This document shows positions 28,583-62,300 of a stretch of DNA of 64,000 bases, piece by piece (position 1 is the first letter of the stretch; each line of letters opens with the position of its first letter). Source of the stretch: Adineta vaga. Lineage: Eukaryota; Animalia; Rotifera. The notes beneath the pieces are model-generated. The model worked only from the letters and a program-made list of their open reading frames with translations. It was not told where the DNA came from and searched no databases. The position numbers and the translations under genes are program-made. The stretch spans positions 5,766,001 through 5,830,000 of the forward strand of contig CP075495.1 in assembly GCA_021613535.1 (NCBI GenBank), read 5' to 3'.

Positions 28583-31500
28583 ATGATGTGTATGTATTGT
28601 AAGATGATCTTCATTCTTCTGATACACATAATTATTTACATATCTAAATCAGGTAATGGTTATGATGGGAAAATCAAGTGTATTTGATATTAATGTATAT
28701 ATTTGTATTAGATGCATTTCGTGTTCATGCTGAAGAGTGTTGCGAATTGGGCCGACTTCAAGCTGAACGTACTCAAACATGTAGTGTGACGTCACAATTA
28801 TTTTTGTTAGAAAATAAAATACATCTTTCTACTCATTGTCGTTTGTTAACACATGTTTGTTGTCTGAAAAATTTACGCGGTTACTTCTGTGAAGAAGGTT
28901 TAAAAACGGCGCTTCAATTATTACCATGCAATGAAACAAAACTTGAATTGAAAGATTCGTATCAGGTTTCTATAGAATTTTTGCTAAAATATTTTGAATC
29001 AATGAAGAATGTTTATCTAGATCTGTTGTAAATGTTGTGAATTAGGTGTTCGAGCAGGTCGAGATCAAGAAGATTGTGAACCGTTGACTGTAATTGATAA
29101 AGGATGTGGTCAACAATTTAATGATTGCTGCAAAAAGGCAAAATCATGTATGAAGATGAGTTTGATTTTAAATTTGTAAACTATTTCTTTTTTAGTAAGT
29201 TGTCATGCTGGTTTTGAAATGAATGACGATCAACGATGTCAAGGTATGTACATACATAATGTTTATATTATTTTTAGTTAATAGTTTGAATATAGATATT
29301 AATGAATGTCTCTCAAGTCCTTGTCCTAAAACAATGATGTGTAAAAATACACCTGGCAGTTTTCGTTGTATAGATGGATGTGAAATTGGTTATACTTGGT
29401 CAATAAAACATGGTCAATGTCGAGGTAGTTTACTGTCTGAATTCTTTTGTAGGACTGTTTTTGAAAGGATTGATTCTGGTTAGATATTGATGAATGTGCA
29501 ATTCATAAGCATAACTGTACGTTCGGACATCGTTGTGAAAATATGCCTGGATCATTTAGGTAATGAAAATGATAATCTAGAAAAATTGTTATTGAATTCT
29601 TTTAAGATGTATTCGGGAGAGAAATTGTGGAACTGGATATCAAGTTGATTCGATAACGCAAACGTGTGCAGGTAGGAGATATAGTACACGAATGATTTTC
29701 AGTTTGTTTCTTTATCCATTGATTGATGTTTAGATGTTGATGAATGTGAACAAGACATTCATGAATGTGGGTAAGTGATCATTTTTTTTTTATAGATTAA
29801 ACATCATTTTCAAACCTTTCTCTTGAGTAGACCGGGTTATATTTGTAAAAATGTTCCTGGAACATACAGGTACTATATGACAATTTTCATTAATATTTAA
29901 AATTCAAGTTTTTTTTTATAGATGTGTACCACAAAATTGTACGTTTGGTGAGAAATTTAATGCTTTTTATGGTCGTTGTGAACAAATTCAATGCCAATCA
30001 GGTTTTAACGTAACATCAACAGGAAAATGTCTTGGTAGAAAACACTCTAATTATACAATACAAAACATATTCAAAATCTATTTTAGATATAAATGAATGT
30101 ACTCAGAAACCAAGTCCATGTAAACTTGGTGAACGATGTGATAATACGCCTGGTTCATATCGTTGTGTACAAACACTGATGTGTTCAAGTGGATTGGAAT
30201 TGAAAGATCTTCAATGTTTAGGTAGATTTCAAATGACTTTTTCTTTTCGATTATTTTGTTTGAAAAACTCATGATAGATATCGATGAATGTACTATTGGA
30301 AATCATACATGTCCTCCATCAGCAACTTGTAGAAATACTCATGGATCATTTTACGTAAGTTTTATATTATTGATAGTTGCTTTTCAAAGTATTCGACTTC
30401 TAGTGTCAATGTCAACAAGGATACATCTTTGAAGATGGTATTTGTGTTGGTATGTATTGTATGTAAGTAAGGTATTTTTGTGTAGAACTATTTATTACTA
30501 GATGAGAATGAATGTTCAAAAGAAAATTCGATTTGTCCAATGAATTCATTTTGTCGAAATACTCCTGGATCATATGTTGTATGTGAACTATTTATTGCTG
30601 ATGAAAGTATTGGAAAAGAAACTCTTTTGTTTACCTTAGTGTGATTGCCCAACTGGTTATAAAATGTTAGATAACCGACGTTTTTGTGAAGGTAAATATC
30701 ATACATGATTTGTTTTTTCTTTGAAATTTCTATTCAATTAGATATTAACGAATGTGAAATATCACCAAGTATATGTGAACAAAAATGTATTAATGTTCAA
30801 GGTTCATATTATGTATGTTTCATTAGAAAATCAATGATTGAAAGTTAGTTTTTGTCTTCTTAGTGCTTATGTAAAGAAGGTTATCGATTGAATAGTGATA
30901 AACAAACATGTCGAGGTGAGACTCATGTTTCATTTTATTTTCTTCTTTTATTGAAATAATACGCCTTTAGATCTTGATGAATGTTCGATGATCACAAACC
31001 TATGTCAATATCGATGTATTAATACGCTTGGATCGTATAAATGTGCATGTCCATCAGGTTTTTCACTTGAACGTAATCGTCGATGTCGAGATATAAATGA
31101 ATGTCAACTTGGAACACACAATTGTTCGAACAATGATGTTTGCGTTAATATTCATGGTGGTTTTCGATGTATTCATATTGATTGTCCCAATGGTTATGAT
31201 AAAATTGGAAATCAGTAAACAAAACTTACAGCTTTTTTTTCTCTATGAATTATCTATTATGTTGTTTATAGTCGATGTCAATTGAATACACGATGGTGTA
31301 TTGAACATCAGAATGATACGACTATGCGTTGTACAATTGATAAACCTATTCGATACGTTTATTCTTTCATTGCATTACCAGGTAATTGAAAATGATTCTA
31401 TTCAAATAAACTTTCTCTTTCATTTCGAAAACCTTTTGTTTTTTTAGCTCGAATGCAAATACCAACTGAAATCTTCCGTCTACATAATAGTCAATTAAGT

Positions 31501-39678: not shown

Positions 39679-40474
39679 ATGGCTAACGATCCTGTTGTTG
39701 CTCAATTAAGACCTGATCAGGTTCAAGAAATTACTACAGCTTTTATGGAATTTGATATCAATCGTAATAGTTACATAACAGCACAAGAAATGAAAGAATG
39801 TCTTCGTCGATCAAATATTCAATATCAAGATGCTGAAGTTGATCGTGTTATTTCAAATATGGATACTAACCATGATGGTACAGTTTCTTATGATGAATAC
39901 ATGAAATTTATGGCTCGTGTTTATACTGGACAATTTGATCAATTTCAGCGTCCAGCAGCACCAGGACAAAATCCTCCGTACAATCAGAATCCACCACCTC
40001 CAAATCAGCCACCATATAACCAGAGCCAACCACCCTATAACCAAAGTCAACCTCCATACAATCAAAATGCACCACCACCATCAAATCAACCACCCTACAA
40101 CCAAAGTCAACCTCCATACAATCAAAATGCACCACCACCATCAAATCTACCACCCTATAACCAAAATCAGCCACCATATAACCAGAGCCAACCACCCTAT
40201 AACCAAAGTCAACCCCCATACAATCAAAATGCACCACCACCATCAAATCAACCACCCTATAACCAAAGTCAACCTCCATACAATCAAAATGCACCACCAC
40301 CACCAAATCAACCTCCTTATAACCAAAATCAACCTCCATACAATCAAAATTCTGCTCAAACGTAAGTTTCCTAACTATAGATGTATTACATTTATTCTAA
40401 TGTTTTTTCTTTTAATTTCTTCTAGCAATTATCCACCACCACCATCATCAGGTTATCCTCCACGTACTTATTGA
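39679..40474 (+). CDS. 243-aa protein: EF-hand pair plus Pro/Gln/Asn/Tyr low-complexity tail; exons 39679-40361 and 40426-40474
   Basis: Loops DINRNSYITAQE and DTNHDGTVSYDE; 14 PPYNQ repeats; a short phase-2 intron leads to TNYPPPPSSGYPPRTY*. Confidence 0.85.
39968..40350 (+). repeat. Coding tandem repeat (21-nt QPPYNQS units nested in ~60-nt higher-order units)
   Basis: Recurrent caaccaccctataaccaaagtcaacctccatacaatcaaaatgcaccaccaccatcaaat blocks. Confidence 0.9.
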
Positions 40475-41320: not shown

Positions 41321-44300
41321 TCAGAGCACGATAAGTGCAACACCTCGTTTAATCCAATATTTTTGTGATTTTGATGAAGGTACTTCAATTGTAAAGACGA
41401 AATTTGTTGAATGTCCAGTTGTTGATAATGTACCAGCACGTGTCAATGTTTTATATACAGGACACATATAAATTCCTGATGTTGGAATTTGTCGATTTTG
41501 TTCCGGTTGTAACCATATAATTGGCATATCAGTAAACAATTCCTTCGGTCGAGATTCTCCAAGAACATGTGCAGCATTATCCCAACGTGCACCTTCAACA
41601 AATAAACCTCGGATATAACAACCATCTGTCGGTGCTTGTGTAATATCTTTGACTGCTTGTTTCATTACCTATAAAAGAAAAGATTTCGCTTGTTTTTGTT
41701 TACTTTCCTAAAATTCATTCGACATACTTGAAAACCAAAACTGACTGTATCGATTGAAATAACAAATTTTCGAGCATAATTTTGAAGTGTACCCGTAAGA
41801 AATGCTTGTGGAAAGAAGAAACCACTAATCCAAAATATGGTTGGAATACCATTATCAACCCATCCTTGAACAAATTCGACACGTTGAATCAAATCAGCTA
41901 CCCAGGAAGCTAATGGTTTTAAACTTGGATATGCCTAAAAAAATTTTGATATATTTTTATCCAAATAACAATTCAAAAAAAGACATAGTGAAACATACGG
42001 CTTTACTCCACATAACAGGTACTGCATTATTAAATAAACTTTTCGACATTTCTTCTAATGCTTGAGAAAGTACTACTAAACCTTTCATTGCCTTGAGTAA
42101 TTCTTGTAAAGATGTATGAATAACATTTAATAATTTATTATATCTAAAGGAGAAGACTAACGATTAAAGGGGGAAAAAAAGGAAAAATTTCAACGTACCG
42201 AATAATTTCTTGTGTTAAAACAGTATTCATAGACTAAAAATAGAAGATTTTTTTCTTTTAAATCAATACTTCCGAAAAGAAATATGAATATTCGATTTGT
42301 AACTAATTAAGATAAATTTTCTGTTCTAACCAACTGATACAAATGATGTTTTCTATCTCGATTAGACTCATTGCTTTACCTGTTCATACATAACCGGATA
42401 TTTTTCCATTACTGTTGCTAATGGTATTGGTTTAGGCACACGCGAAAGTACATCTTTAACTATTTTTTCAATAACAACATCACGATTTTCACCGGCTGTC
42501 GCTGTCTTCGGTTGTAAATCAAGTAAATCTTTTAATGTACGATAAGTTTCATTTTGTGCGAAAGTAACTAAAAAGAAAGATCGAAAACGTATTTTTTTTT
42601 CTTTATTCAAATTAAAATATTTCTTCATTTACTATTTGCATTTTCATGTAAACCGAAAATTTCCGGTGTATCATTGATTGGTAAACTACGAATATAAGCA
42701 AGATAGGCTGGATGTTCTGATGTTGGTGGTAATTGATGATAAACTTGTGATTCATCATAACAATAATTCGAATCGAGCACTTTTGAAGCATAGAAATCAT
42801 CAAGAACATTCATTACACAACGTCGATCCCAATCATCAGTAACACGACCACCTATAAGAATAAAAATAAATTCCATAGTTTTCATTTTATCGATCATTAT
42901 TCTTATTTACCATAATTGATTTCACCCGCTGTATATTTCAAAACCTATGAAAAAAAATTACATGTATTACTTTCATGAAAAACAAAGAGATCTATTTTTA
43001 TTTTTACTTTATAAGCAATTTCTGTATATTCCATTAAAAACATTCGTAATTGACTCATACATATACGTAAATCACCATCTGTAAATTCATATGGAATGTT
43101 AAAACCCAGTGGACCTAGTCAGAAGATATTTGTATATATATATATATCTATGTCATGAAATGAATTGAATCTCCTACCAAATTTTCGTCGTTCAAGTAAA
43201 ACGGCATGGAATAGACAAAGCGATAAGAGTAAATGTTTAAATTCATCAGCCTAATTTCAAATCATAGGTTCGTTTTTTTTTTATATAAAGGAGAAATTAC
43301 GTACCTTTCCTGTACATGACGTGAGAAAATCATCGTTAAGAGTGATATATGATCTTAGTAGATTTGCTTTAATACCACGAGGTGGTTCAACTGTCATTTT
43401 ACTTCCATTTTGTAAGATCATCACAGGAAATTGAGGACTTGGCATACTTGTTAACCATAATCGGAAATCTTTATGCACCTATGAAATCAGAAGTAGAGTA
43501 AAATGAGATTTTCTCTTTCCTATTCGCTATTTAATCACATTCTGTAGAATAGGAAAAGAAGAAAAGAAGAAATTATTATAAATCTTTTGCATTTCTATTT
43601 CTCGGATATTTATCGCTTGATAGATCAAATGATCTAATAAGCATCTCTCGATAAGAAATGATCGATGAAATAGAATTCACTTCTCTATACATAGATACAT
43701 ATTGCTCTTACATGATCTGGATCGACTTGTTCGACTAATCGTTCTAAAGTTGGCATCCATGATGGTGATAAATGGCAATTTTGAAAAAATACCCATTGTC
43801 CTTTTTCCATAGCTGCACGCATCATTGCTTCAGCTCTAGGACCCTAATAAAAAGAATTCATGTATGTATAATGATTTTATTTCTTGATAAATTCTTACCT
43901 GTCCTTGACCTAGTGAAATTGTATTGAGACGTTTAGCAAATTTCATTTCTTCAGCAAATTTATATAAATCAGCAGCTGGATCTGTACCGACAGATAAAAC
44001 AAAGATTAACGGCGTTGTTGCTGATGAATCACGAAAGACAAGATGTAAATCAGCCGTCTATAACAGAAACAGAGATAGAAAACAAAATATTGATTGATAT
44101 TAGTCAGATACGATTGACAGTATCTCAATTTTTTTTTCTCTCTTTAGATTTTTTCCTTCTATCATTTACAGTAGGAAAATATCAATGTATTTTTTCGAAG
44201 GGTGATATATTGACTCGCTTGAAATAAATAATTTATCTAGTTTTGATAGATAGATCGATCGATCAATAGATATATACATACTTGAGGCTCAATAAATTTT

Positions 44301-47300
44301 TGACCAAGATTCTGAGACACAAAATCTTGCATGGCATTTGTAACTTTGTCAGGACGGAGACATTTGAGAAACATAATTTTTTGAAAATCATCCAAACGAT
44401 CCGACCATTCTTGAGGTAGACGAGCTCTATGATAAGATACATAAAGAGATAGAAGAAAGTGTAATAAGACTATGTTAAATCACATGCATATTTGGAATAG
44501 TTACAAGTAGCAATCAAAAAAGCGAATAGCCGCTCCCTGAGGAAGAATATCCGCTCTTATGTCTGTTTTCTCGTTGTTTTTCCTTTTTTTTCGTTATATT
44601 ATATGAAAACGATCTCATCATCATCATCATCATCATCATCCTCGTCAAATACGAGCATAAAACACATTCATATATATGTCTGAGAATACTAGAAATCATA
44701 GTCTTTTTGCTATCGTTTATATAAACTATCGTCACCAGACATCATATATCTTATTCCCTTGAATATATCCAAAGATAAATCTAGGGAAAAGTTTTATTTG
44801 ATAACGTATCGCCTTATAAATATCAATATTGGTCTTGGAAGGTAATTGACTTTTGTTCTTTTCTTCAGTAATCTTGAATAAGAATCGATGATTAGTTTGT
44901 CATTTTCTATAGTCATATTGTTGCTTAATTTCGTATCCACAAAAAGATATATATCTGTACATACATATTTTCTTCACATAGTTCATCATTGTATTAAAGC
45001 TTCTATTCTCAATTGACAATAAAAACAAATATATGAGCAATATGATGACGATAGAAAATCAACGACAATATTAATCATCAATACTATTGCTTTTTTGGAT
45101 TTATTCATTGATTGAATGAAAATACTTCTCTGTAGGAGGGTGTTGTCTATTGATTCAATCGATAAAAGAAAAGAAAAGGGAGTAGGAAAAGAATTTGTTA
45201 CTCTTTATTGTATTGTCTTTTCTATTTGCTTTCAAATATATTATTTCTTCATTATACATGCACATCTCTATATTATTACCTTAGAAAACTTAATTGATTA
45301 TAACATCGACATTTTCTTTTCTGACCTTGTCGATCTTTTTTCCCAACGATAGAGACTTAGAAACATTAACAAGCAATGATTTCTGAGAAAACAAATATGC
45401 CCTATGGGCTAAATGTTGTTGACGTGTTCAACATTACATATATTCACAACCAACCGATTTCTTATCTTTTCATTATAGACAATAAGAGGTAGATATTTCC
45501 ACTATTCCTAATGCATCTTTCATTACAGATTAAAGAATGTCGACTAACCCCTGCTGAACTAAGTAGTATATATGCCTGCCTATTTTCGAATAAGTTTCTC
45601 TTTTTCTTTTTTTACTAACTAAAATTTCACGTCTCTCATAAATTAAATAAATAGACATAGAAGTATTTTGCTCGAAGCTATTTTCTGAGTTATTAGTTTT
45701 TTTTATCTTAAGTTGTTCGATCAATAACTGATTTGATTAATTCATCGATGAAAACAGTATGTATTGATATATTTCTACGTACTTTTCTGGTTCACTACTA
45801 TCGAAGATTTGTTTGTAATCTTGTAAATGATTACGAAAGTTTTGTGCAAAATTTTTGAATGGTTCCAGTGATTCAAGTGTAAGAATTTCCAACCAAATAC
45901 GTTCTGTAATCCACTTTGGTGCTGGATTCGGTACATCAACAGGACGTATTGAACCGCCGGCCAAAAAGAATCGATATTCATTCTAAATAGAATTTATCAT
46001 ATATAGATATTTTTTCTTGTTCTTTTCATTTTAGACAAAACGAAATAAAAACTATCATGAGTAAAAATCCATGTTTATTAAATGTAAATGGATCGATTCG
46101 TTTCGATACATTACATGATATTGAAGTTGCTGGTTATCGTTATGTGATGTTAACAATATGTATATTTGGTGTGGTATGTAATATACTGAATTTATGTGTT
46201 CTTCTTCAACGTCGTCTGAAAGAATCACCTTATACTTATCTAACAGGATTAGCTTTTGCCGATATGTTTACATTAATTTCTATTTCACCTGTTTCAATCG
46301 TACGTGGTGATTATATTCGACATGAAAATATTTTTTTTACTTTAACACGTCTTGAAGCTCAACTTTATATGCCATTAGCAAATTATTTTGGTCAAGTCAG
46401 TATTATGATTACTGTTGCATTAACAATGGAACGTTATTTATTTACAACTTATCCATTACGTACACAAAGTTTTTGTAAACCAAGCTATGCACGACGTGTT
46501 ATTGCTATTATTGTTGTATTTTGTGGAATTTTAAATATTCCACGATTTTTAACCGAAACAGTTGAAAAAAAGATCGCATCAGGAACAAAATTTAATACAT
46601 CAAATTGTATAACACATCCATTTCAAATAAAATATTCATCAACAAATCTCTCACATATTGGTCAATGTTTTTGTGTCATTGGTCAAACAAAAGAAAGTTT
46701 TGTACCATTTCAAAATTATTATTATTATACAATGTTAGGTATTAATCAAATAATTCCATTTGCAATCTTACTTTTCTTAAATTTAAGTTTAATAACACGT
46801 GTACAAACATCGAATCGTTATACATTGGCTGAATTAATTGCTCGTCAGCATCATAATTTAAATTCGACTACACCAGGTATGAGTGCTGCTGCACAAAAAC
46901 GTTTACGTGAAGAACATCGTCTAACCAAAACTCTTGTTGCTGTTGTTGTTGTTTTTCTTATATGTAATACATTTACAATTATATCTTATCCTGGTCTCGT
47001 ACGATTTTTAACAAAAAACAAGTATCCAACTTATTTCTATGTCGGTTTTCGTATACAAAAATTAATTACAAATATTATGTTACTACTAAATTATTCAATT
47101 AATTTCTTTTTCTATTGTGCATTTAATGAAAAATTTCTTTCAACTTTAAAGAAAACGTTTCGATATGACAAATTATTTTGTGGATTAATATCTTCACAAC
47201 ATCGAACATTAGCTACGATGTCAACAGCAACTTTACAATCAAATATCTGTCAAGCAGATCAATGTATTTCAACCTATCATACACATACAGAGCAATCCAA

Positions 47301-50300
47301 TCGACGACGAAAACAATTTGCTAATAAACAAGAATATGAGAAGATATCTAAAGATGAATTAATTATCAATGATGATTTATAAACAAAACTATCAAGATTA
47401 TTCTTTTTTGACAATCAATGTACTGATCAAGTATTACATTGATATAAAACAGTTCTTATACAAAATTAGAATAGAATAATCAGTATGTCGAGAACAATTT
47501 ACATCAATGATTGAAATAAAAACCATGTCAGAAGATATTCCTTTCTTATTAAATTCAATTGAAAATAGTCATTGATTTCTTTAGATATAGTCAATAAAAG
47601 TTCATAAAATTGAACTTACCATTGAGATTTTCTTTTGATTCATTAATACTCGTACAGTAAGTAAGAATGCAAATAATAACTTATGTTTTTCAAATAAACT
47701 TCGACATACATTGCAATAAAGATTATATGTAAAGTAATCATTGATATTTTTAATACGATTTTCCAAATTATCTAAAAAGAGAAAAAAAGAAAGATTCTTT
47801 CTATGAATATAAGTATACAAAGGTATAATTTTACCTGCACGTGGTGCACCTTGTATACTTGTTAAAAAGATATTTGTAAACCATTCTAATGAATATTGAT
47901 ACATAGGATCAATATTAGCTAAATCAGATACACAGAAAAATAAGATTTGTGTATTAACAGCAACAGGAACATATTCAGCACGAGTCATATCAATGTCCTT
48001 TTCTGTTTGTTCGGCTGCTTGCATTTTAGTCTAGAAGAAGATGAAGAGAAATGAAATATTTTCGAATAAAGAAATAAACGAACTTTGATTTCAGTTGATT
48101 TTGATTTCGATGCTTCCAAAGCTGTAATCAATTCAATATCATCGACAGGATTTTCACTTGTACTTAATTTTTCAAGAATCGTATCTTCTAGAGCTTTTAA
48201 TTCATTACGCATTGTTGCATTTGATATAATTAATGTATTCTTCATTTCTTCTAAATCTGGACGTTCTTCAGCAACGACACGTGCTAACATTTGATCTTCC
48301 AAACCACTGAAAAAAATACGCTTCATTGAAAAACACTAACGAATTCATTTCTTTTCATTTTACCTTGGTGATAATGTAAAATTAACTAATGTAACTTTAA
48401 CAGAGATTTCTGGTGTATAATGTGGATTTGGTAACTTAGTTGTGATATAAAAACGAAAATCATCATGATAAGGTATAACAGCATCACCTAGCTTGATCAC
48501 AGTACTACCCGATTGACGAAACGTCTATTTAGAAAAGATAGATTGAAAGTTTACGAGCATTATTTCAAATATTTACCTGTCGTAAGAGAACAGGTTCAAG
48601 AGCTAAAAATAAGAAAAAAAAACGAAATAATTCTAGAATATCATTGCAAAATCGAATACAAACCAGGATCTATATCTGTCCCAACATTTTCTAACAAGCA
48701 TGGTTTACCAAATCGAATGGAATTTTCTAATGTTCGTAAATAATCACGCTCAGATAATTTCATTACATCAAGTCCAGTATTTTTTTCCTAGAATAACAAT
48801 ACAAAATGCTCTTGTTATTTCTAATGTTTTCTTTTTACCATATTTTTAATCCATTTATTAGCTTGTCCTTGTGGATCAATAAATAAAGGCCAACGATTTG
48901 AATATTGAACAATAACACCATTCTGTACTGATAAATTATCCTTGGGTAAACCAGCTAATTGCCAATTACGAATTTTAACAGCATCACCAAGAACTCGAAC
49001 TAATTCAGGATTATCCGAATGTGGAATATTATATGCTTTTAGTTTTGTGATCCATTCTCGAACCATATTTTCACGATATTCAGTCTAGGCAATTAAAAAG
49101 ATTCGTAACAAAAACAAAAAAAAATAAAACTATAGATTTACTGTAAATGGACCGAGATAAGCAATAAATCCCGAGCAAACCAGTACATCACCAATGACAT
49201 TGCCCAACGAATTATCTAACATAGCAACATTTTCTTGCCAACGAATTTTTTCATCACCTAAACCAGTTGTTAACTATTTGAAATGAAAATATGTATTTAT
49301 AGAGAGATAAATATTCATTCTAATGAAACTTACTCGTTCGGCACGTGCAATACGTTGATTACATTCATCAACTTTCGTTTCATATTCTGTTTTCTTTCGT
49401 ACAGCATCTTCATATTTAACTTGTAATGTTCTTAAACCTTCTTCTAATTTCTTTAATTCACGTTTTTTCGTTGCTAATACTTCTTTAACAACAGCTAATT
49501 CGGCTTCAGCATTTGCTAATGCTTCTTTACGTGGTGCAACTTCTTTATTGATCATATAGAATGCATACATAGCTCGACACCACATACATAAAGATTTGCA
49601 TGCTTTGGATGTTTTTTCAATTTTAAGTGGATCAAATTCTGGACTATCGATATGTTTTTGTAATTTTTGTATAACAATTTCCGGAATATTTTCTTTATCA
49701 AATTCTCTTAATGATTGAAGGAATTTACCCGCATCTCCTAATAAACCACGGCCTGGTTCCCAATAATCATCTTCTTTCTTTCCCGGTTTATTCAGTACAG
49801 GTACTTTTAATGGTTCAACTTGTTTCAATATACAAACAGCTTCCATAGTTAATTTGACACCTTGTGGAGGTCGTTGTAAAGAACGCACTTCATTGATATC
49901 ATTTTTCGATAAAACTTCAAGACTTTGTAAAGCAGCTTCAAGTGCTGGCATAGCTTCAGCAAGACGTTCAGAGGCTTCACTTGCAATAGCACGAGTTTCT
50001 TTGACTTTCGTTTGAACTTCTTCTTCTTCAAGAGCTACTTTTGCTTTAATTTCTTCTGTACTTGATGTATCTTCAGCAATTTTTGCCATGGTTTCATTCG
50101 TTTCTTCAACAGCTTGATCAAGTAATGGTAACATTTCATTTAATTCTACACGTAATTTAGCTACATCTTTTTCTGTCGATAATAGTTTATCTAGACCAGT
50201 TTTCGTACGTCGTTTTGCAAATACTAATTCATCTTTTTTCTTGCCAAAAATTTTCGAAAATATATTTAAAAGTTCAAGATATGATGTAGGAGTCACATAA

Positions 50301-53300
50301 TTATATCGACTCATTTCTTCACGATATTTTATTGTCATTATAGCTGCTGATTGATGAATTTCTTGACATAGTTTAACTAAACCTTGAACAATTTTATCAT
50401 CAGCTTCTAATGTCGGCATATTATTCAAATAAGTCTCCGAAACAGCTTCTAAAGCATCTTTTGGCCATTCAGAATACCAATCAATTGTACAGCAACTAAA
50501 GTGAAAAAGATTACAATTATTGATTAGTACTATCGTATTCATTTATTAGAGGTTTACTTGACTAAAGCCGGAAATTGACGAAGTCGAGCACGAAAAACTT
50601 CACCAATAGGACTATAAACAATTGAAGAATGAATTTGTTGTTCGAAAAAATTATTTTCATTTTCTAAATTTACCTCATACAAACAACAGTATGTAAATTT
50701 TGACGTACACGTTTGGTATAAGCCGAATAAAGATTTGTTTTTGTTGGTGGTAAGCCAGCTTCAGATACAACAGGTTTCATCATCGTATAAATTTGTTCAA
50801 GTTCATCGAATTGATAAATATTTGGTACATCACCACTGTTGAGAATATTATTGAGATCTTCAAGAAAGGATTCACTTTTAATCTATATAGACATACATAT
50901 ATAATTCATAAGAAAACTATAAAAATTAGTCTATTACTTGTGTGTCCGAGAAGAGAAAAACAGTTGGTGTATTACGAAGACCAGCATGAAGCATAAATTT
51001 TTTCAAATCATCTTTCCATTCACTCATACCTATGATAAACAATGACAACATAATAGAAACAGATATCGTACAATCGAATTCATTTACCATAACTTTTCGA
51101 TAATTGTATAGAACGAAGTTCATATTCGGAACTAAATAAAAATACATTAATTCAACTTTCTTCTTCTTCTTTTATAATTGTATTTTGTTTAAAGACTTAC
51201 ATAAATGCAGCAAGTCGTGTTAATGATTGTCGACCAGAACCTCCAACACCTAATAATAATGCATTGCCAAGTGGTTGTTTAATAATACGTATAATTCTTG
51301 AAATATGTTTCATTGCGTCCATAAATAACACTAAATTCATTTTAGTAGTGTTAACTTGATTATATTCTTCTAAATATTCATCTAGACGTTTCTTCATCTA
51401 CAAAAATAAATAAATATTTCACAAAATTTTCCTTCTAATATGTTTACCAATTTCACATCATCCAATTCTTGATAGGCTTTATCAGCAGTTTGAGCAACGA
51501 AATCTCCATAGAGTACAGGTTCTTGTACAGCATTATCAAAATTAATATTGAAATCTGATTTCATATGTTCACCAAGTAAATTACGAAACCAATCTCGATC
51601 TTCATCATTAATTAATCGATCTTGAAATACACGACAATTTTCATGATACCATAAACGAAGTAAACTTTCGACATTCTAAAACATAAATTATTCAATAAAA
51701 ACTTTGCAATCAAGTATTATTGTTCTTCTTACGTCAACTCGTTTTGCTTCCATCATTAACATTCCTTGAAAAACTTTCGATAAATCTCGTAAATTAAATG
51801 TATAATGTGATTTGCTCGGTGTTGGAAGTAATGATGCACAAACTGTTTTATATACTTCAATCGATGACATAACTAATTTATCACTAAGACTTAGAACAAA
51901 TTCATTTTGTCTTGTCCACCAATTGAGTATAGTTGAAAAGATTTTTCTCATACTATCATTTTCAAGTTCAGTAAAAGATAAGAAATTAAAATGACGTGTT
52001 AGACGTGGCGTGACTGGATTACGACCACCACTGGATATAAATGAAAATATCAAATAATGAGTTCCGTTTTGAAAAAAAAAACAATGTCTTTACCCTGGTG
52101 GACCCATCGCACAAATAAAATTGATATCAACTAATGTACGAAATTCACCGACTACTTTTCGATCATACCATCCTTTAAAATCCATATATTGTCGAATTAA
52201 TTCAATTGGTGGTTGAGCACCGTAAGTTTCCAAGGCTGGCATGTTCAAATCATCGATAAAAAATAGAAATACTTTGCCTAATGGTGGACCATAAATACCA
52301 CGACGTCTAAAATGAAAATAGTTCAACTTTCGAATTACGTTTACGATTGACAAAGAAATAATCTAAACCTTTTATCTAATTTTGAATCAATTAAATCTTG
52401 TGTTTGATTTGCATTTGTTTTAGCTGAAAACACAATAAATTCTGGACTGAATTCTTTTGGCATTGAACGTATTAGTTTATCTGCAACAGTTAATGTTTTG
52501 CTTGTTCCTGTCGGTCCAACACAGAGAACTGGTCGATCCATTCGAAGTAACATTTCTATAATATGTGCATTACGAATATTATCAATTGTTGGTACGAGTA
52601 TATCGGAAAATTTTGCATCATTAGCAATTTGAAATGGTGGTAAATCAGCTAACCAATGTTTCCAACGTGGTTGACGTTTTTTATTTTCATCACCACCTTC
52701 TTCTTCATTGGCTTTTTGTTCTTCTGTCGGTTGAACAATACCACCATCATCAAATACATAATCATAAACGAGTCCATCAGCAGGTAATGCAAGTTTGATC
52801 TACGAATAAAATTTTATATGATTTAATACAATTAGAAAATTTGTTTAGAAAATCTACTGGATTATGTTGAAGTTTTTGACGTAACCATTCGGAAAATTTT
52901 CGACGTGAATCATTATCACATGAAGCACCCACTGACCAGATAAGTGAAAAAATAAACCATGGTTCGATAAGATCAGCAACACGTTCGGTTGCTTCAGGTG
53001 GAGCTGGTTTATCAGACTAAACATAGAAAAAGATTGAATTATATAATTGATACTTATTTATAGATATATGTATAAAGCATAATGCAGAAGCGAAAAATCA
53101 AGCAATTCAGTTTATTACTACGATAAATATTTATTATAGCCATAATTAGTTAATAATAAGATTAACATAGAAAAACGTCGAACTAAGACTACTTACACGA
53201 CCTTGACGTTGACCTTTCTATTGAAATAAAAAGTTAAAAAAATATCGTATTTTGCTGAACTTTTTTACAGAAATTTGAATAGAAGTTTTTAAAGATTTAA

Positions 53301-56300
53301 AAATGAGATTTTATTATCATCAACTTACCTCTCTGGGTCGAAATGGTTGAATAAAACAATCAAGCATTTTAATTAAACTAAATGTTAAATTACTATCATA
53401 TGTTGGAATAATTTCTTTAACATTCTTTCTAATAAACTTTAATGATGGCTAAAGAAAGGAGAAAAAAAAACAGATGTTATCAGAATGAAACAGGTATACA
53501 TTTGATAAATTACTTCAAGAAAATTGGCAAATAGTTGATTAATTGCTTCATAATGTTTAAAGACTGGATCGGGTAATTTTTTTACCCAACATTCAACAAA
53601 TGGTTGTAAACCAAGAATCGAAGGTTCTAAATAAACCATACCACAACGAGAAACAGTAGCAGGTGATGCTTGAGATAGATCAGCAACTTCGAACATCATT
53701 GTCATTGCCTGAAAAAATTCAAAGAAAATTTATCTTATAAGTTTCAAGATTCGTCTTTATCTCTCTCGATCTCATTACTTCAGTCATTTTAATAATTTCA
53801 CCACTACTTAAACATAATTTTTTGTTATCATCCAATACTGTATTCATATTTTCAATCCATACAGCATCAACAGGACCTAAAATTGTTATAATTTATACAA
53901 TGAATTTTATTCAAAAGAAAAAGTCTCACTTACCATCAAATAAATACCATCGTTTATCATCATTTTCTGCTGCAACACCATGTCGCATCAATGTTGAAAG
54001 TATACCATCCGTCCTAAACAAATGTTTTATTTGTTACTTATAATTTCTAAATTAAGATTTATCATTGAAATTTACCATTCATGAGTTAAATCATCGAATG
54101 CACCATATAATTGACCCATGGTAATCGATTTTGGATTGAGAACATAAGTATGTACAGGTTTGAATGGTGAACCAGCAGGATTGATTTTTCCTTTCATATG
54201 TGTCATAGCAATTTGTAACGATTCATAACTTTTCGTTTTTCCAGAACCTGTTGGACCAACAAGCATCAGACCTACACGAATAGATAAAATCGCATAGTAA
54301 ACGAGTCAATTTAGAAAACGCTCAACATACCATGTCGAACAATTGTTGTTTCGAATAATTGAATGCATTTGAGTAAAAAGCCAGGTACATCTTTAATATT
54401 AAGTTGACGACATGCATGTCGTAAACCTTCTTCAAGTACTTGATAATCAATTGGTTCTTCTCTACAAAAATATACTCGTACAGAGTTGTCTTTTGATATC
54501 AAATAAAGTCTTACTTAATTTTTGGAAATAAATCAGAAACAATACCAGTAAATAATTTTAAATCATCTTGAAGAAATTTCGGAATGTTAACATCACGAAT
54601 AGCTCGAAGACAAATTAAATCCTAAGTTATAAAACAAAAATCTTTTGATTGAAATATAAGTAATGCGATCGATAACGAACTTCATTCATATTTGGATATT
54701 GACGTTTTAAATTACCAGCGGCTGAAATAACAGATTTGACAGCACGCATACCAAAATCGTAATGATCTTGTGAACTCAATTGTTCAGATGACAATTTGAA
54801 GGTTTGTACAATCTTCTTCGATAAAGGTTTTGCCTCCGAAAAACCAAATGAAAATAGAGAATTTTCAGCAATAAGACCATAATCAGGGACCATCATAGCT
54901 AGAAAATAGATATTCATATCTATGCATTCATGTTTTCTTCATTACTTACCAACTGGTCGAAAGAGAGCTTTAAGATTGTCAGGTAATTCAGTACTAAAAA
55001 TGGATGATAGAATCACTTTTAATCAGAGCAAGGTTTACATACCGTCCAGCATAACCTGGATTCATGGTAATGAAAACAGCGCAGGATGATTTGAGAACGA
55101 TTTCTTTTCCTTCGAACATGAAACGTTCAGCCTAGACGAGAAGAAAGAAAAATGGTAATTTTAGAATATAGATTTCAACAAAATTTTCTCAAGATTATAA
55201 TTAGCAAAAAGTATAAAAGAATTTAGAAATCATATTATTAACTCAATCAATATACTCGTATACGAAGAGTTAATTGAATTGTTAATATTTGATTTGCCAC
55301 TACAGATAAGACTTCGATATCAATACGCTATTATATATAACATATCTTCATAGATTGGAATTTTATTTTTTTTCTCTTATACGAACATTAAATTCATCCA
55401 AGCAACACCAACAACCACAACTGATAAATAAGTGTATTAGAATTCGTTGTATTGGTTATTATTTTTTGAATAAAACGAAACAAAAATCATTGAATTACCT
55501 TTTGCATAAGAGCCTGATTAATCACTTGAATTTGTTGAGCGACTACTGAGAGTACTTCAATATCAATTCGATTAAATTCATCGAAGCAAGCCCATGCACC
55601 AGCACTGAAGAAAGAGAGAAAGAGCAGAGAATACTAAATGTTGAGCTAATAGATTTTGAATCAACAAAGAAACCCATCGAAATCAATCTAGCAGAGCCCA
55701 ATTAATCATAAGAACAAGAAATGGAAAGAAGAAATCTAGATTTTGTTTTGTTTATACCCGTAAGTGACATGCACGAAGAATTGTCGATATTTGATTAGCA
55801 ACAACACTCAATACCTCAATATCTATACGATTAAATTCATCAAGACACGCAAATGCACCAGCACTTTACATATTTTGATGATATTTTATTATAAAAACTA
55901 TCCCGACAATCAGTTACTGTACTCACCTTGCCAAACCACAGAAAAATTTAGCCATAGCCTGAAATAAAACATATGATGAATGACATATTCAAAATAAATG
56001 TTGATGATATTACCATGAAATCTAATTGATCAGAACAATTGAACACGACACATTGTACAGCCATAGCTTTAGCTAAATCTTTAGTTGTTTCGGTTTTTCC
56101 TGTACCAGCGGGTCCAGCTATGGAAATATATTCAATCGAAAACGATTTTAACAAAGAAAATCTACGATTTCTTCAAATTTACCTGGTGCACCACCAAATT
56201 TCAAATGTAAAGCACCAGTTAATGTTAAATAACAGCGATCTGTTAATGGTGTAATAACCAATCGTGGTGTATTACCTAAATATTCATAACCATAACGAAA

Positions 56301-59300
56301 TTCTGCATTTACAGCACGAATATATAAATGATCTTCCTTCCAATAATAACGTAACTAGAATGAAAATTTGTACAAAAATTTTCTTTCAATAAAAATTTTA
56401 ATGTTTTGTTTTACTTGTGAAATCCATTCGAAATCATTGACATTCATTACTTTTTCTTCAATTAAATTAATCACTACATCACGTGCATGTACTTCAATAA
56501 CAATCAATGCTTTCAATGTTTCACGTGCATTATCTGTTAATTCACCACGTACTAATTCTCTCAATTCATCTAGTTCATGTAATTGTTGTTTATGATATTT
56601 AACAATTTCTTTTTTTTCTAATGCATCCGAAACTTGTTTAGTCCAAAACGTTTGTGAACCAGCAACAACAACTTGACCAGGCCAATATTGAACCCATTCT
56701 TTACGTGGTCGCTAAAAAGAAGGTAAAAAGATACACTAGATTATTTCGGTTTTTATTCCTCTATTTACTATTGTATAATCTTCTAAAGCATCACGAATAA
56801 TTTGTCGTAAAGATTCACGCATGACTCGTTCAATTTCACACATCCAATCTTCAACATTACCAGTAGGATAGATTTCTTTACGAAAAGCAACTTCTTCTTG
56901 TTCAGCTGAATACATTTTTGATATACGCATATCATCTTCAAATTTAACCTTGAAAGAAAAAGACAATGGCATGATTTATTCGTTCTTTAAAAAATGAAAT
57001 CAATGAATTTACTTTCGTTATATTTTCAAAACATTTTCTTAAATGTGGTTGAACAGCTTTTGGATCTTTTGTTTGTGATAAAATTTGAAGTAATTCATCA
57101 TCGGATAAGAAATAAAAGCGTGGAAATGCCATACGTTTTGTTTCTAAATATTCACTTAAACCTTTTTGAACTTGTTCAAGTAATTTATTTGCTTCACGTA
57201 AATTATCACGTAAACGTGCTTCAGGACACAATGAAATGACTTCAGGATTTTCTTTAGCTTGTTTCATTACTTTACGCCATATACGTTCCATTGTTTGGTA
57301 TCTTTTCGATTCAACAGGTAATTGTCGAATAATATCTTCCGATGAAAAAATCGGTTCAAGGTACTAAACAGACGGAGAAGATCAATTCTTAATGATCATA
57401 TTTTATGATGATTACTCACCAGCCATGAACGTTGACAAGCAAGCCATTCATCTAAAACTTCTTGTGTAATCTTTAATTTATTTTCCCATTGAGCAATACG
57501 TTCTTCAAATGCTTTTTTAAATGGTGAAAATGACATTGATTGTGTAGCAACAATATGATCATCAAGCATTTGAGATATTTCTTCGGATGCTTTGATAATA
57601 TATGTACCCGTTTGTTTATAGGGTAAAACTTCAAATCGAATAGGTTTCCATTCTTGTTCCATTTTATCAAGTTGCTGTTCAATAGAAAATTCTTTTCCAG
57701 CTTTTTCTGCTACTTTAGAGATAACATCGATATGTTTTTGTAAACCCATTTCTATACACTTTGCAAATGTTAATTCTTTTTTTGGTCGAACAGCCATTTT
57801 AACCAATTCAGATAGCTAAAATAAATCAAATTGTCTGAAATATTGAAAACAACAACGAAACAAACCTCTTCCCAATGACGATTACGCATACCAGGTGCAC
57901 GTAATGCTTGAATTAATGGAATGGAAGGTTTAAAATCTTCAATTTGACCTTTAATTGTTAATGCAATCTGTTGAATACCTATTTGAAATGAATACAAAAC
58001 CAAAAATATTAGACAAAATGATCATATATACATTAGGATATACATTAAGACAACATCGTATACAAAACAACAATCATGCAATCTTTACATTCATGCAGAA
58101 CAGAGATATCAGAAGAAAGGTTTTTTTTTATCAATTGTAGATTTTCATTGTACAAAGAGAGATGCATATAGAAAAACCTCGAATATCTGTAATATCAGGG
58201 TCCTGAATTTTAGCGAGTAAAATCAAATTTGCTGAAAATATGAATATATAAGTAATCAATTCATTTTTATTTATCTTACCTTCATTGTCGGCAAAAGTTT
58301 TTATCGATCTATGTGTATTTTTATACCTAGAATAGAATTTCACTCGTATAACTATTCTATTTCAAAGAATAATCACATACATTTCAGTAACATTCTTTTC
58401 AATATCTTCAGCATTGACTGAAGTAATCGGATCGTTCATCCAACTATCATATGAACGAAGCCAATCGGATGTTGTTGACCAAAGTACACGATATGGTTCA
58501 AAATCTTTCACAAGTCGACTTAATTTTTCGTACTAAGAATACAATCAGAGAAATGATGAGAATAATTTCTAATCTGAAAAAAAAAACAAGTACTCACATT
58601 TGTCACAGGTAAACCAAGTAGACGTTCACGATTATTATATGTTTGTGATGCTTCAACACATTCTTTCAATGATTTATTCAATTTACGACATTCATTTGCT
58701 ACTTCATGTGCACGATCCATACTCATATGTCCCGAAAGACCAGCAACAGACATCTATTATAGAAATAAAGTATAAAATTGTTTTAAATTGAATAAATATT
58801 TCAACTCACTATCAATTGATCGATTTTATCATTAAGTGCACCTGTATCTTGAACTTGCAATTTTTTAAATCGTTCTTCATCTTCTTTATGTTGTTCTTCA
58901 ACTTGTTCGAGCATAGTTCGTATTTTCCATGGCCATGATAATAAACCATATCTTAAGAATAGATGAAGAATTACATTTGAGAAACTTGTTTTTATTTTCG
59001 ATTACATACTTCATGCCAAAATCTTCATTGCTTAAATTATAAAAGAATTCATCAAGTACGACATATTCTTCGAGTACTTTTACAATATCATCCTAGAATT
59101 GAGAAAATCAAAATAGTTGAAAATAAAATTTATAAATCATCAAAATTGACTGACGCGTTTATCTTCGACTTGTTCAGGTACTGATTTCATCCATTCACGA
59201 TGTTCGGATAAATCTTCCGCATTATTTGCTTTTTCGTATAATTTTCGTTGAATATCACGAAACGTATCATTTAACTAAAAAATCAATAGATAAGTTCATA

Positions 59301-62300
59301 TCATGAGCAAACGTAGAGGTATATCAGAGAGTCAAGTAATCAAATAAAATCTCTACTTGTTCTTTGGAATTTATATTCATACTTCTTCTGTTCTTGTTCG
59401 TGCTTTTTTCGTTTGACTTGATAGTAAAGCTTCGATTAATGCTTTTCTCTTATTCGATAATGCTTCACGTAGTTTTTGAGCAAATATAAAATACGGACCA
59501 ATAATAATCGATGTTGGTATACTTTTTTCGAGTTTATCTTTTTCATGTATATGAATTAAAATTTCATTTCGATAGTCTTCAATTGATTTTTCTGTTTTTT
59601 CAAAATCTCTATAAATATCAATCAACAAAGGTAATCAAAATCATTTCATTTATACTCTCAACTTACTTAATATAATGATCAATATTTAAATTCATTATTG
59701 GTACATATGATTCATACGCTAAATAATACGAGAAAATAAATCGAATTTTATAATCAATCAAATAAATTTTACCATCAGCATAACCTTTTAATGGAATTAA
59801 TGATGCATAAACTGCTCGTTGTAATGTTTCTCGCCATTCAATGACTTTCTTTTCTTGTAAAGCAACTGATTCTAATCGTAACATTTCACCACCCCAAAAG
59901 ATATTTTCCATCACATCCTATAATAAATTAAATCTCATCAAAATCATCAATTTTTCTTCTGTCAATTACTTTTTCAATTTGTGGTATAGCGTGAGTTTGT
60001 AAGATGGCACGATCGAATGCACCCAAAATAATATTCGGAAAAGTTTCGTAAGTTGTTACATAACGTGGACCAACTTGATCAATAGTTAAATCCAGATGAA
60101 ACAAGGGATTTTTCGGTGGCCTATTGATAACAAGAAAAATCATCAAAGGCAATTTTAAAATAAACGAATACATACTTATATGGACTAGTGATTAAATCAT
60201 CTTTTGGCCATTGAAAACCTTCTTTCATATGTAAAACTGGTGAACAAGCATCGACAATCATTCGAACATAATTTTGACAAGATTCTTGGACAAGAAATCG
60301 AAGAGTATCTTGCATCATAAATTTCACACGTTCAATAAATTTTTTTAATTTTGATACTTTATATATATGATAATCAGATTCATTGATATTATACCTAAAT
60401 AAGAGAGAGAATATGAATTTATTACACGAAGAAATTTGCATAATTTACCATCCACGACCAACATCGATAAATTGTGTTTTAATACCTTGTCGAAGATTAT
60501 TTTTCCATGTATCAGTTAGATACATATGTGTCTAAAAGGATGATTATTTTCTTATAAACAGATAAATGTATGAAATAGAAAGAAACTTACAGTCGATGTT
60601 TGATTAACTTGCATACTTTCAAATTCATCAAGTTTTACATGTTTTGGAAAATTCTTTTGTAATAAACTTAAATTATTGACTACATAATCACATTCTGTTC
60701 GAACGAGTCTTAATGCGTCAATAGCTGATTTGGATGTTAAGAGAGAAATAAACTAATTGCAAAGAAAAATGCGAGATATTTTCATAGAGATATTGAACTT
60801 TTAACAAACTTTAAATTGATCGAAAACTTCATTGAAAGAATAATCAGGAATATTTACACAGCCAGAAGATGGTACAGGTCGACGTTGTTTTGTTGGTAAA
60901 GTAATAAATGCAAATGATACTGGGTCGGATTGTGTTACATTCTCAAATATCATTGAATTCATTGTTCGAGCATAATCTAAATTAACTTCTTCTACGATTG
61001 GTGTCACATATTCGTCTTTACTAAATTAGAAGAGAAAAATAAGCATCGAGAATGAAAAAACAAAATATTTCGAATTTTTCATACATTGTTTTTGAAATAA
61101 CACTTGTTTTAGTTAGCTCAATCATTCGTTTAATACGTTCATCATCGAGTTTACCAATACCATCTGTTGGCATACAATCAATAAATAATGTTGAACGAAG
61201 TTCGGCTTCGGTACGTTTTCGATCATGATAAGCTTTGGCAACTCGATCAGCAAAGATACGTGGATCTTCAGCAAGAAAATGTAATTGAATACGTGGTATC
61301 CAATAACGGCCATGCGTACCATTAGTTGAATAATCATCTTGATGTTGATGACCTAAACAAATCGAAACTAGGAATTTTGAATTCAAGACTTCTATACCAA
61401 CCATTCGTAGCTGAGTTAGCTCCAGATCGTTGACCTCCTTCAATAGCTTCCATTTGTTTACGACTTTTCTTTGCTGGTCGATACATATCGAATACATCAT
61501 GTTCTCGATCATCAGGTATTACAAGCCATAATTTTTTTTCAGCATCATAATCATGTATACTAACATTATGCCAATGAAAACGCAAATTACTATCTTTAAT
61601 ATCAGCTAGAAATTGTTCAATATTTAATTATTATATGAATATGAAAGTTAAAAGAATTGATTACTTACTGATCTGTTCAGCGGGTACATTTGGTAAAAGA
61701 GCAACACCAGGTAATGGTTTATTCAAACCTGTAAATGGATCATGACCTAGAGCAAGCCATGATTTCGGTGTCCAAATTTCAAAATCAATATCATCAAAAT
61801 AATATAGTGGTAAGAAAGGATCAAACGGTGCTGGATCCTGAAAATATTCACGAACAAGATATTTCTTACTAGATATGTTTTGTCAAATTTTTAATATTAC
61901 TTCATCTGGAAGATTCAGTGTGACAATTTTATCAGCAGGTACATATTTGGGCATAAGTTTATTTGTATCAATATGTCGTTCTTCGAGTAATGATGGTAAA
62001 TCAAGTGAAAGATAAAGGCGTTTTCGTCTACAATCAATCAAATCATATTATTATTCGGTTTTAATTAATATTTACCGTTCGATTTCAACCTTTCTTGGCA
62101 ATGTATGTGGTGCCGTATAGAATGGCATAAAAACTTTTGGTTCATATGTTTTTTCCAAATAGACATCACTTCGTTTATATTCAGTAGTAAATTCTCCTTC
62201 TTTACTATTGGCCAATATTTGTGCAATATCAATTCCTTGTAAATCGAATACACTTGCTACAAGTAATACAAATAGAATTTAGACTATTGAATAGTCATTT

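Follow-up and report, generated by a model that had tools for sequence, protein, structure and literature searches.

The window studied here comprises 64,000 nucleotides (nt) of the rotifer Adineta vaga (contig CP075495.1, positions 5,766,001 to 5,830,000 of the forward strand), and all positions below refer to it. Its minus strand carries a dynein heavy chain gene in which the exon encoding the AAA1 Walker B strand with its following helix occurs in three homologous versions, here called units A, B and C. An earlier note on this DNA had read these units as splicing alternatives. In this study, we reproduced the coordinates of all units from the minus-strand sequence with a script and compared the cluster with RNA contigs and with related genomes. 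The RNA contigs were compared over one 3,501-base stretch, for which the runs X1 and X10 were informative. Relatives were represented by the metagenome-assembly contigs L028, L030, L032 and L033, which together with the window make five taxa. On the evidence set out below, we consider it likely that a DNAH1-type inner-arm dynein gene here contains three coding units which are mutually exclusive, locked by the reading frame and conserved as a cluster.

The Walker B exon cluster and its host gene

The dynein gene is visible as a series of minus-strand, exon-sized open frames running from about 61.5 to 41.3 kb, on which Pfam matches follow each other in gene order: DHC_N2, AAA_7/lid, AAA_8 and the MT stalk, AAA_lid_11, and Dynein_C. 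The gene class was assigned exon by exon. When an exon of 422 amino acids was compared with solved structures, it matched DNAH1 best (3.9e-125), ahead of Chlamydomonas DHC2 (8.6e-94) and of DNAH3/7/12 and other inner-arm classes (1e-83 or weaker). For this reason the host gene is, judged by its sequence, of the DNAH1 type (inner-arm dynein d / IAD-4 class). Unit B aligns to DNAH1 residues 1626-1660 and its first 25 residues are identical to mammalian DNAH1; it is therefore the canonical Walker B exon, as had been proposed before. The features of the cluster, in the order of transcription after the gene itself, are the following.

41321..61512, minus strand: DNAH1-type axonemal inner-arm dynein heavy chain gene, approximate visible extent from Pfam matches; the N-terminal end may extend upstream.
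56014..56117, minus strand: constitutive exon with the AAA1 Walker A motif (P-loop) GPAGTGKT; joined to its neighbours in X1 and X10 contigs, amino acids identical in five genomes.
55927..55958, minus strand: constitutive exon of 32 nt, ending in phase 2 after AG; joints 55957>56013 and 55604>55927 in X1 and X10, protein identical in five genomes.
55758..55863, minus strand: unit A, 106 nt, alternative, Asn-Gln in the helix; orthologues in L028, L030, L032 and L033 with AG..GT kept, pN/pS 0.14.
55499..55604, minus strand: unit B, 106 nt, default, canonical Walker B exon; spliced to both neighbours in X1 and X10, joints 55130>55498 and 55604>55927.
55387..55420, minus strand: C1, first part of unit C, 34 nt, cysteine-rich strand before Leu-Asp-Glu; peptide identical in four of five genomes.
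55328..55386, minus strand: intron within unit C, 59 nt, GT..AG; at the same codon boundary in L028, L030, L032 and L033.
55256..55327, minus strand: C2, second part of unit C, 72 nt, phase 0 at both ends; orthologues in the four other genomes.
55043..55131, minus strand: downstream constitutive exon, starting AERFMFEG and extending across the sensor-1 strand FITMNPGY; X1 and X10 contigs connect it with B and the next exon.

The three homologous 106-nt units thus lie on the minus strand between the exons at 55958-55927 and 55131-55043. The first base of each unit completes a Ser codon opened by the AG of the upstream exon, each unit ends in phase 0, and every unit is preceded by AG and followed by GT, the donor of C1 being GTTCGT. 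Most of what the earlier note had described here was reproduced, namely the positions, the 106-nt totals, the phases, the splice sites and the homology that makes the units alternatives for the same strand and helix. Its view that unit C truly consists of two exons also holds, as the internal intron is kept in five genomes. As a small correction, the upstream exon has a size of just 32 nt. In pairwise comparison, units share 67-68 of 106 nucleotides and 22-24 of 35 amino acids. The heavy synonymous divergence noticed earlier is borne out by these differences, which sit mostly at third codon positions: silent sites among the units are saturated (proportion of differing silent sites, pS, 0.67-0.83), and a 15-residue core from Asp-Glu onward is identical. 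When an equal number of substitutions was placed at random, none of 20,000 simulations reached the observed amino acid identity without a stop. The similarity between the units is far beyond chance. Adjacency, equal length, phase and splice sites, as well as homology and a shared structural element, by which Pillmann et al. recognised mutually exclusive exons (Pillmann et al., 2011), are all found in this cluster.

The length of the units locks their use to the reading frame. A total of 106 nt is a multiple of three plus one, so that any second unit is shifted by one base and terminates at the TGA inside its own GATGAA (Asp-Glu) codons, whether B or C follows A. The downstream exon after two units opens with TGA, and when all units are skipped a stop appears 22 codons into the next exon. 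This agrees with the earlier claim that including two units or none shifts the frame. On the other hand, a 318-nt tandem of all three had been expected to stay in frame and does not, as B after A is read out of register and meets the TGA at GATGAA. The frame is open with exactly one unit, and none, two or three in tandem give an early stop. Mis-spliced combinations would presumably be removed by nonsense-mediated decay, as in other genes.

A protein-level self-comparison of the window revealed no second duplicated exon in the dynein gene. We looked for a homoeologous partner of the cluster in the genome and found none. The genome search for dynein copies covered 6 pieces (100.8 Mb), and the 16 other Walker B matches belong to different dynein genes, each with one copy of this region in the stretch fetched. 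Several dynein paralogues are paired between pieces 1 and 4, 2 and 5, and 3 and 6, a pattern in keeping with a bdelloid rotifer; the DNAH1-type gene is without a partner copy.

Splicing and conservation of the units

Spliced contigs of both X1 and X10 join the upstream exon to unit B and unit B to the downstream exon at GT..AG borders. Splicing with such borders was found at 13 introns of the stretch, and 11 neighbouring introns are supported in the same records. The contigs of the gene have a depth of 13 and 20 in the two runs. The X1 and X10 samples therefore have B as their main form, with at most a minor share for A and C. Thus, of the three isoforms expected by the earlier note, the path from the upstream exon through B to the downstream exon is confirmed, and the paths through A and through C were not seen in these contigs. 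One unspliced contig of 151 nt over C1 and its intron, from run X5 of a close relative, is uninformative on unit choice, and run X11 resembles DNA.

The splice signals differ between the units. The polypyrimidine tract before the acceptor of B is complete (17 of 17 positions) and the best in the region, compared with 47% before A, whose acceptor is AAG, and 41% before C2; the weak acceptor of A is conserved. Since the GTTCGT donor and the AAG acceptor are each used at nearby introns supported by RNA, the signals of A and C are usable, if weak.

The first relative came to light through a protein search with exon A, which returned a frame of 96 amino acids (P0001) that is a straight read through B, the intron and C1 of another organism, located on contig L028. 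This contig (57.9 kb, GC 0.50 versus 0.30 in the window) carries the whole A/B/C1/C2 cluster with equal lengths, phases, AG/GT sites and the GTTCGT donor, the intron in C being 62 nt long. Its constitutive exons differ from those of the window by silent changes only, at saturated silent sites, and its introns show 49-58% identity with indels, which we take as roughly the random level without a shuffled-sequence control. Between window and L028, nonsynonymous and synonymous divergence (dN/dS) amounts to 0.094/1.65 for A, 0.044/saturated for C and 0/0.58 for B. A scan of metagenome contigs anchored on the exon of 99 amino acids at 56415-56711 recovered A, B and the split C in L030, L032 and L033 as well. 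All four relatives preserve the unit lengths, the phases, the splice sites and C's internal intron, and the intron sequences have diverged.

Over the five taxa, the ratio of replacement to silent differences per site (pN/pS) is 0.14 for A, 0.14 for C (C1 and C2 combined), 0 for B and 0.04 for the constitutive exons (229 codons). Silent changes therefore exceed replacements about seven-fold per site in A and C. We hold A and C to be translated because this codon-aware conservation contrasts with the randomised introns. The earlier note had proposed a dN/dS check on orthologous exons, and the cross-species purifying selection that we find argues for A and C as coding. It had also named a situation that would speak against its reading, in which only B is spliced and A and C have decayed; just B is seen in the contigs, and the coding of A and C is kept in five genomes.

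The amino acids of unit B are identical in all five genomes. Moreover, its silent sites are conserved in excess: among codons for conserved, degenerate amino acids, 19 of 33 in B are identical in all five genomes, compared with 59 of 202 in the constitutive exons (Fisher p 0.0024). The content of splicing enhancers is one possible cause. Stable local folds in B or A were considered as another and are unsupported, with fold z-scores of -0.67 to +0.36, and -1.29 for one A copy.

When the 35-residue units were placed in a tree, the copies of A (92/91) and those of C (88/88) each came out as a clade, the B copies were grouped (96/91), and A and C were weakly joined (80/85); the tree has 35 columns only and its deeper branches are poorly settled. 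Because the copies of A, B and C each group by unit across species, the duplications predate the species splits.

Clusters of two units were found on four further contigs, all of them distant, animal-like and from metagenomes.

L029:2528-3114: two tandem 106-nt copies of the DNAH1 Walker B exon, AG..GT.
L039:1882-2431: two tandem 106-nt copies of the DNAH1 Walker B exon, AG..GT.
L067:2381-3363: two tandem 106-nt copies of the DNAH1 Walker B exon, AG..GT.
L098:3241-4395: two tandem 106-nt copies of the DNAH1 Walker B exon, AG..GT.

Compared copy against copy, silent sites on these contigs are near saturation (pS 0.54-0.98), and pN is 0.02-0.15 in most comparisons, with the exception of the divergent first copy of L029 (pN 0.33). 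Both copies on each contig appear to be under purifying selection, and a Walker B splice switch may be widespread. In a different dynein class of another organism, two straight genomic frames (P0002 and P0006) contain a Walker B exon, a short intron-like stretch and a second copy of the helix part starting VLSVIAQQL. This second helix copy may be a partial alternative in that dynein.

Use of the units and competing explanations

All units encode a Walker B segment. Each of A, B and C has the hhhhDE motif in all five genomes, and the units agree in Asp-Glu, in the Asn-Arg that follows and in the first helix half. As claimed in the earlier note and confirmed by script and unit comparison, A and C share a Leu for the Phe before Asp-Glu and an Asn for a Gln in the helix. 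A Leu before Asp-Glu is natural in the Chlamydomonas I1 dynein 1-beta. In A, a Trp is replaced by Phe or Ile. The strand of C holds four to five cysteines, a trait kept in all five genomes; to arrive at it, three Ala codons each had to change at two bases. Divergence among the units is greatest in the final ten helix residues.

Based on these data, we propose that B is the default because its acceptor is the strongest. The splice signals of A and C are weaker but conserved, and a minority of transcripts would contain one of these units. Both are probably minor alternatives or restricted to certain cell types; particular ciliated cell types, life stages or conditions are candidate settings. In the variant motors, the catalytic residues would be unchanged, and the hydrophobic core beside the catalytic Glu and the surface of the helix would differ. 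Unit swaps would have functional consequences, among which may be the tissue-specific tuning of ciliary beat. The intron of C would have been gained after duplication, given that neither the other copies of the 106-nt exon nor those of distant relatives are interrupted. Inheritance of this intron from paralogues was considered and rejected: in 4 paralogues the intron lies inside the Glu codon, 7 nt upstream, which is another position. A wider proposal, which we offer tentatively and regard as rather doubtful, is that the switch is old, with two units in several invertebrate lineages and three in rotifer-like genomes, and gives cell types or states motors with different ATPase kinetics; the cysteine-rich C would possibly be a redox-sensitive motor variant in desiccation survivors.

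Several observations weigh against a cluster of three exclusive coding units. Units A and C have no RNA coverage, with a depth of zero in both X1 and X10; RNA contigs lose rare variants, so that this zero depth bounds the usage of A and C and does not exclude it. An A-type query against short proteins, a straight genomic frame of 41 amino acids from L032, had one genomic read-through frame as its sole match, and spliced products of A or C were not among the results. An exhaustive search of representative proteins with exon A likewise found no A-type product. Constitutive exons are under roughly three times stronger constraint than A and C. L030 is close to L033, and the five genomes thus amount to fewer than five fully independent lineages. 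Finally, we found no conserved RNA structure to guide unit choice with RNAalifold on five genomes and fold z-scores: the consensus has a covariation term of +4, with compensatory changes in 7 of 171 pairs, and the z-scores span +0.36 to -1.29.

A long helix between C1 and C2 over the internal intron, proposed by RNAalifold, was rejected, as its energies match those of dinucleotide shuffles in three genomes (z +0.09, -0.71 and -0.16). The GUUCGU donor of C1 can pair with the Asp-Glu codons just upstream, and the resulting 6-bp hairpin appears in the folds of three out of three genomes.

The absence of A and C from the RNA contigs leaves room for the view that both are unused relics of exon duplication, that is, pseudo-exons, with B alone in the mRNA. 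The spliced contigs, in which A and C have zero depth, would be expected under this view, and the weak acceptors before A and C2 and the lack of a spliced A or C product among short database proteins point the same way. We nevertheless consider it quite improbable. Relics would not be expected to keep their exact length, frame, AG/GT sites and internal intron while the introns of L028 have been randomised to 49-58% identity with indels, nor to accumulate synonymous changes about seven times faster per site than replacements across five taxa. In the same sense, the paralogous copies are saturated at silent sites and yet identical in their 15-residue core.

Alternatively, A and C could be poison exons, never translated as alternatives, whose inclusion beside B leads to a premature stop and decay and thereby tunes the level of dynein mRNA. 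Double inclusion does create an immediate stop, weak conserved splice sites would suit a regulated minor event, and such transcripts would be unstable and hence missing from the contigs. Poison exons, however, need no reading frame, whereas the substitutions in A and C are codon-aware (pN/pS 0.14) and keep the Asp-Glu, the Asn-Arg and the helix core in the very frame that is used when the unit replaces B. The two-unit clusters elsewhere show the same pattern, and it would surprise us if poison exons turned out to be the explanation. As for a splicing of all three units in tandem, to which a combined length divisible by three (318 nt) would lend itself, or an artefact of assembly, both can be dismissed, as the RNA contigs skip A and C, B would be read out of register into stops, and the same arrangement occurs in four independent assemblies.

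Surrounding sequence and known systems

Other features of the window lie within or beside the dynein gene. At 46057-47382, on the plus strand and hence opposite to the dynein, an open frame of 441 amino acids carries a rhodopsin-family seven-transmembrane receptor domain. It is nested in a dynein intron of about 1.6 kb, flanked by the exons at about 45740-45982 and 47605-48030; this intron is unusually long in a genome where most introns have 50-65 nt. Just past the 3' end of the dynein gene, at 40000-40320, there is a tandem repeat of near-identical units spaced about 60-100 nt apart, which are 84-100% identical at the protein level in several frames. Farther away, at 29260-31210 on the plus strand, a series of related open-frame segments of about 40 amino acids (31-54% identical) suggests a gene of repeated domains.

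The cluster shares features with several well-known cases of exclusive splicing. In Drosophila Mhc, swaps of homologous exons in the ATPase and converter core change kinetics between cell types, as has been shown experimentally. The rotifer gene is likewise a motor gene with swappable homologous exons in the ATPase core, known here from its sequence and the splicing of B alone. In FGFR2, the IIIb and IIIc exons are exclusive, enforced by frame and policed by nonsense-mediated decay. Similarly, the length of the rotifer units is not a multiple of three and the inclusion of none or two leads to an early stop, from which decay would be expected to follow. Dscam exon 6 and 14-3-3 zeta rely on RNA pairing between docking sites and selectors. 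They resemble the rotifer cluster in having more than two alternatives within one intron; unlike in these genes, we found no conserved complementary intron elements, and the predicted helices are no stabler than shuffled ones.

Mutually exclusive exons have also been described in dynein. In Schistosoma mansoni, the motor domain of the cytoplasmic dynein heavy chain DHC1 includes a mutually exclusive exon (Pillmann et al., 2011, PMC3228551), and some DHC genes have alternative splice forms of the motor domain (Kollmar, 2016, PMC5100056). In the rotifer cluster as in S. mansoni DHC1, equally long homologous exons follow each other in tandem in a dynein heavy chain motor, codons are split at the exon borders, and exclusivity was judged from length, frame and homology (PMC3228551). 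The S. mansoni gene is cytoplasmic and has two alternatives, located as 'the middle of the gene' (PMC3228551). In contrast, the rotifer cluster belongs to an axonemal DNAH1-type gene, affects the AAA1 Walker B itself, offers three alternatives, one of them split by an intron, and is conserved across genomes. A full-text literature search that included alternative exons of dyneins found no description of a DNAH1 Walker B exon cluster. Exclusive exons in dynein motors are thus already known, and the DNAH1 Walker B cluster with a split alternative appears to be new.

The cluster is of interest in several respects. Unit C would be an exclusive alternative that requires the co-inclusion of two exons, and its split makes it a clean example of an intron gained in one copy of a duplicated exon. 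Moreover, A, B and C are natural versions of the AAA1 Walker B strand and helix that evolution has already tried out, and they lend themselves to biochemical comparison. From the clusters of two units in other animals, we suspect that the switch is widespread and that annotation has missed it. Gene duplication, which has left many heavy-chain genes in each genome, is the usual explanation for the diversity of dynein isoforms. A conserved splice switch within the principal catalytic site would add another way of tuning ciliary motors.

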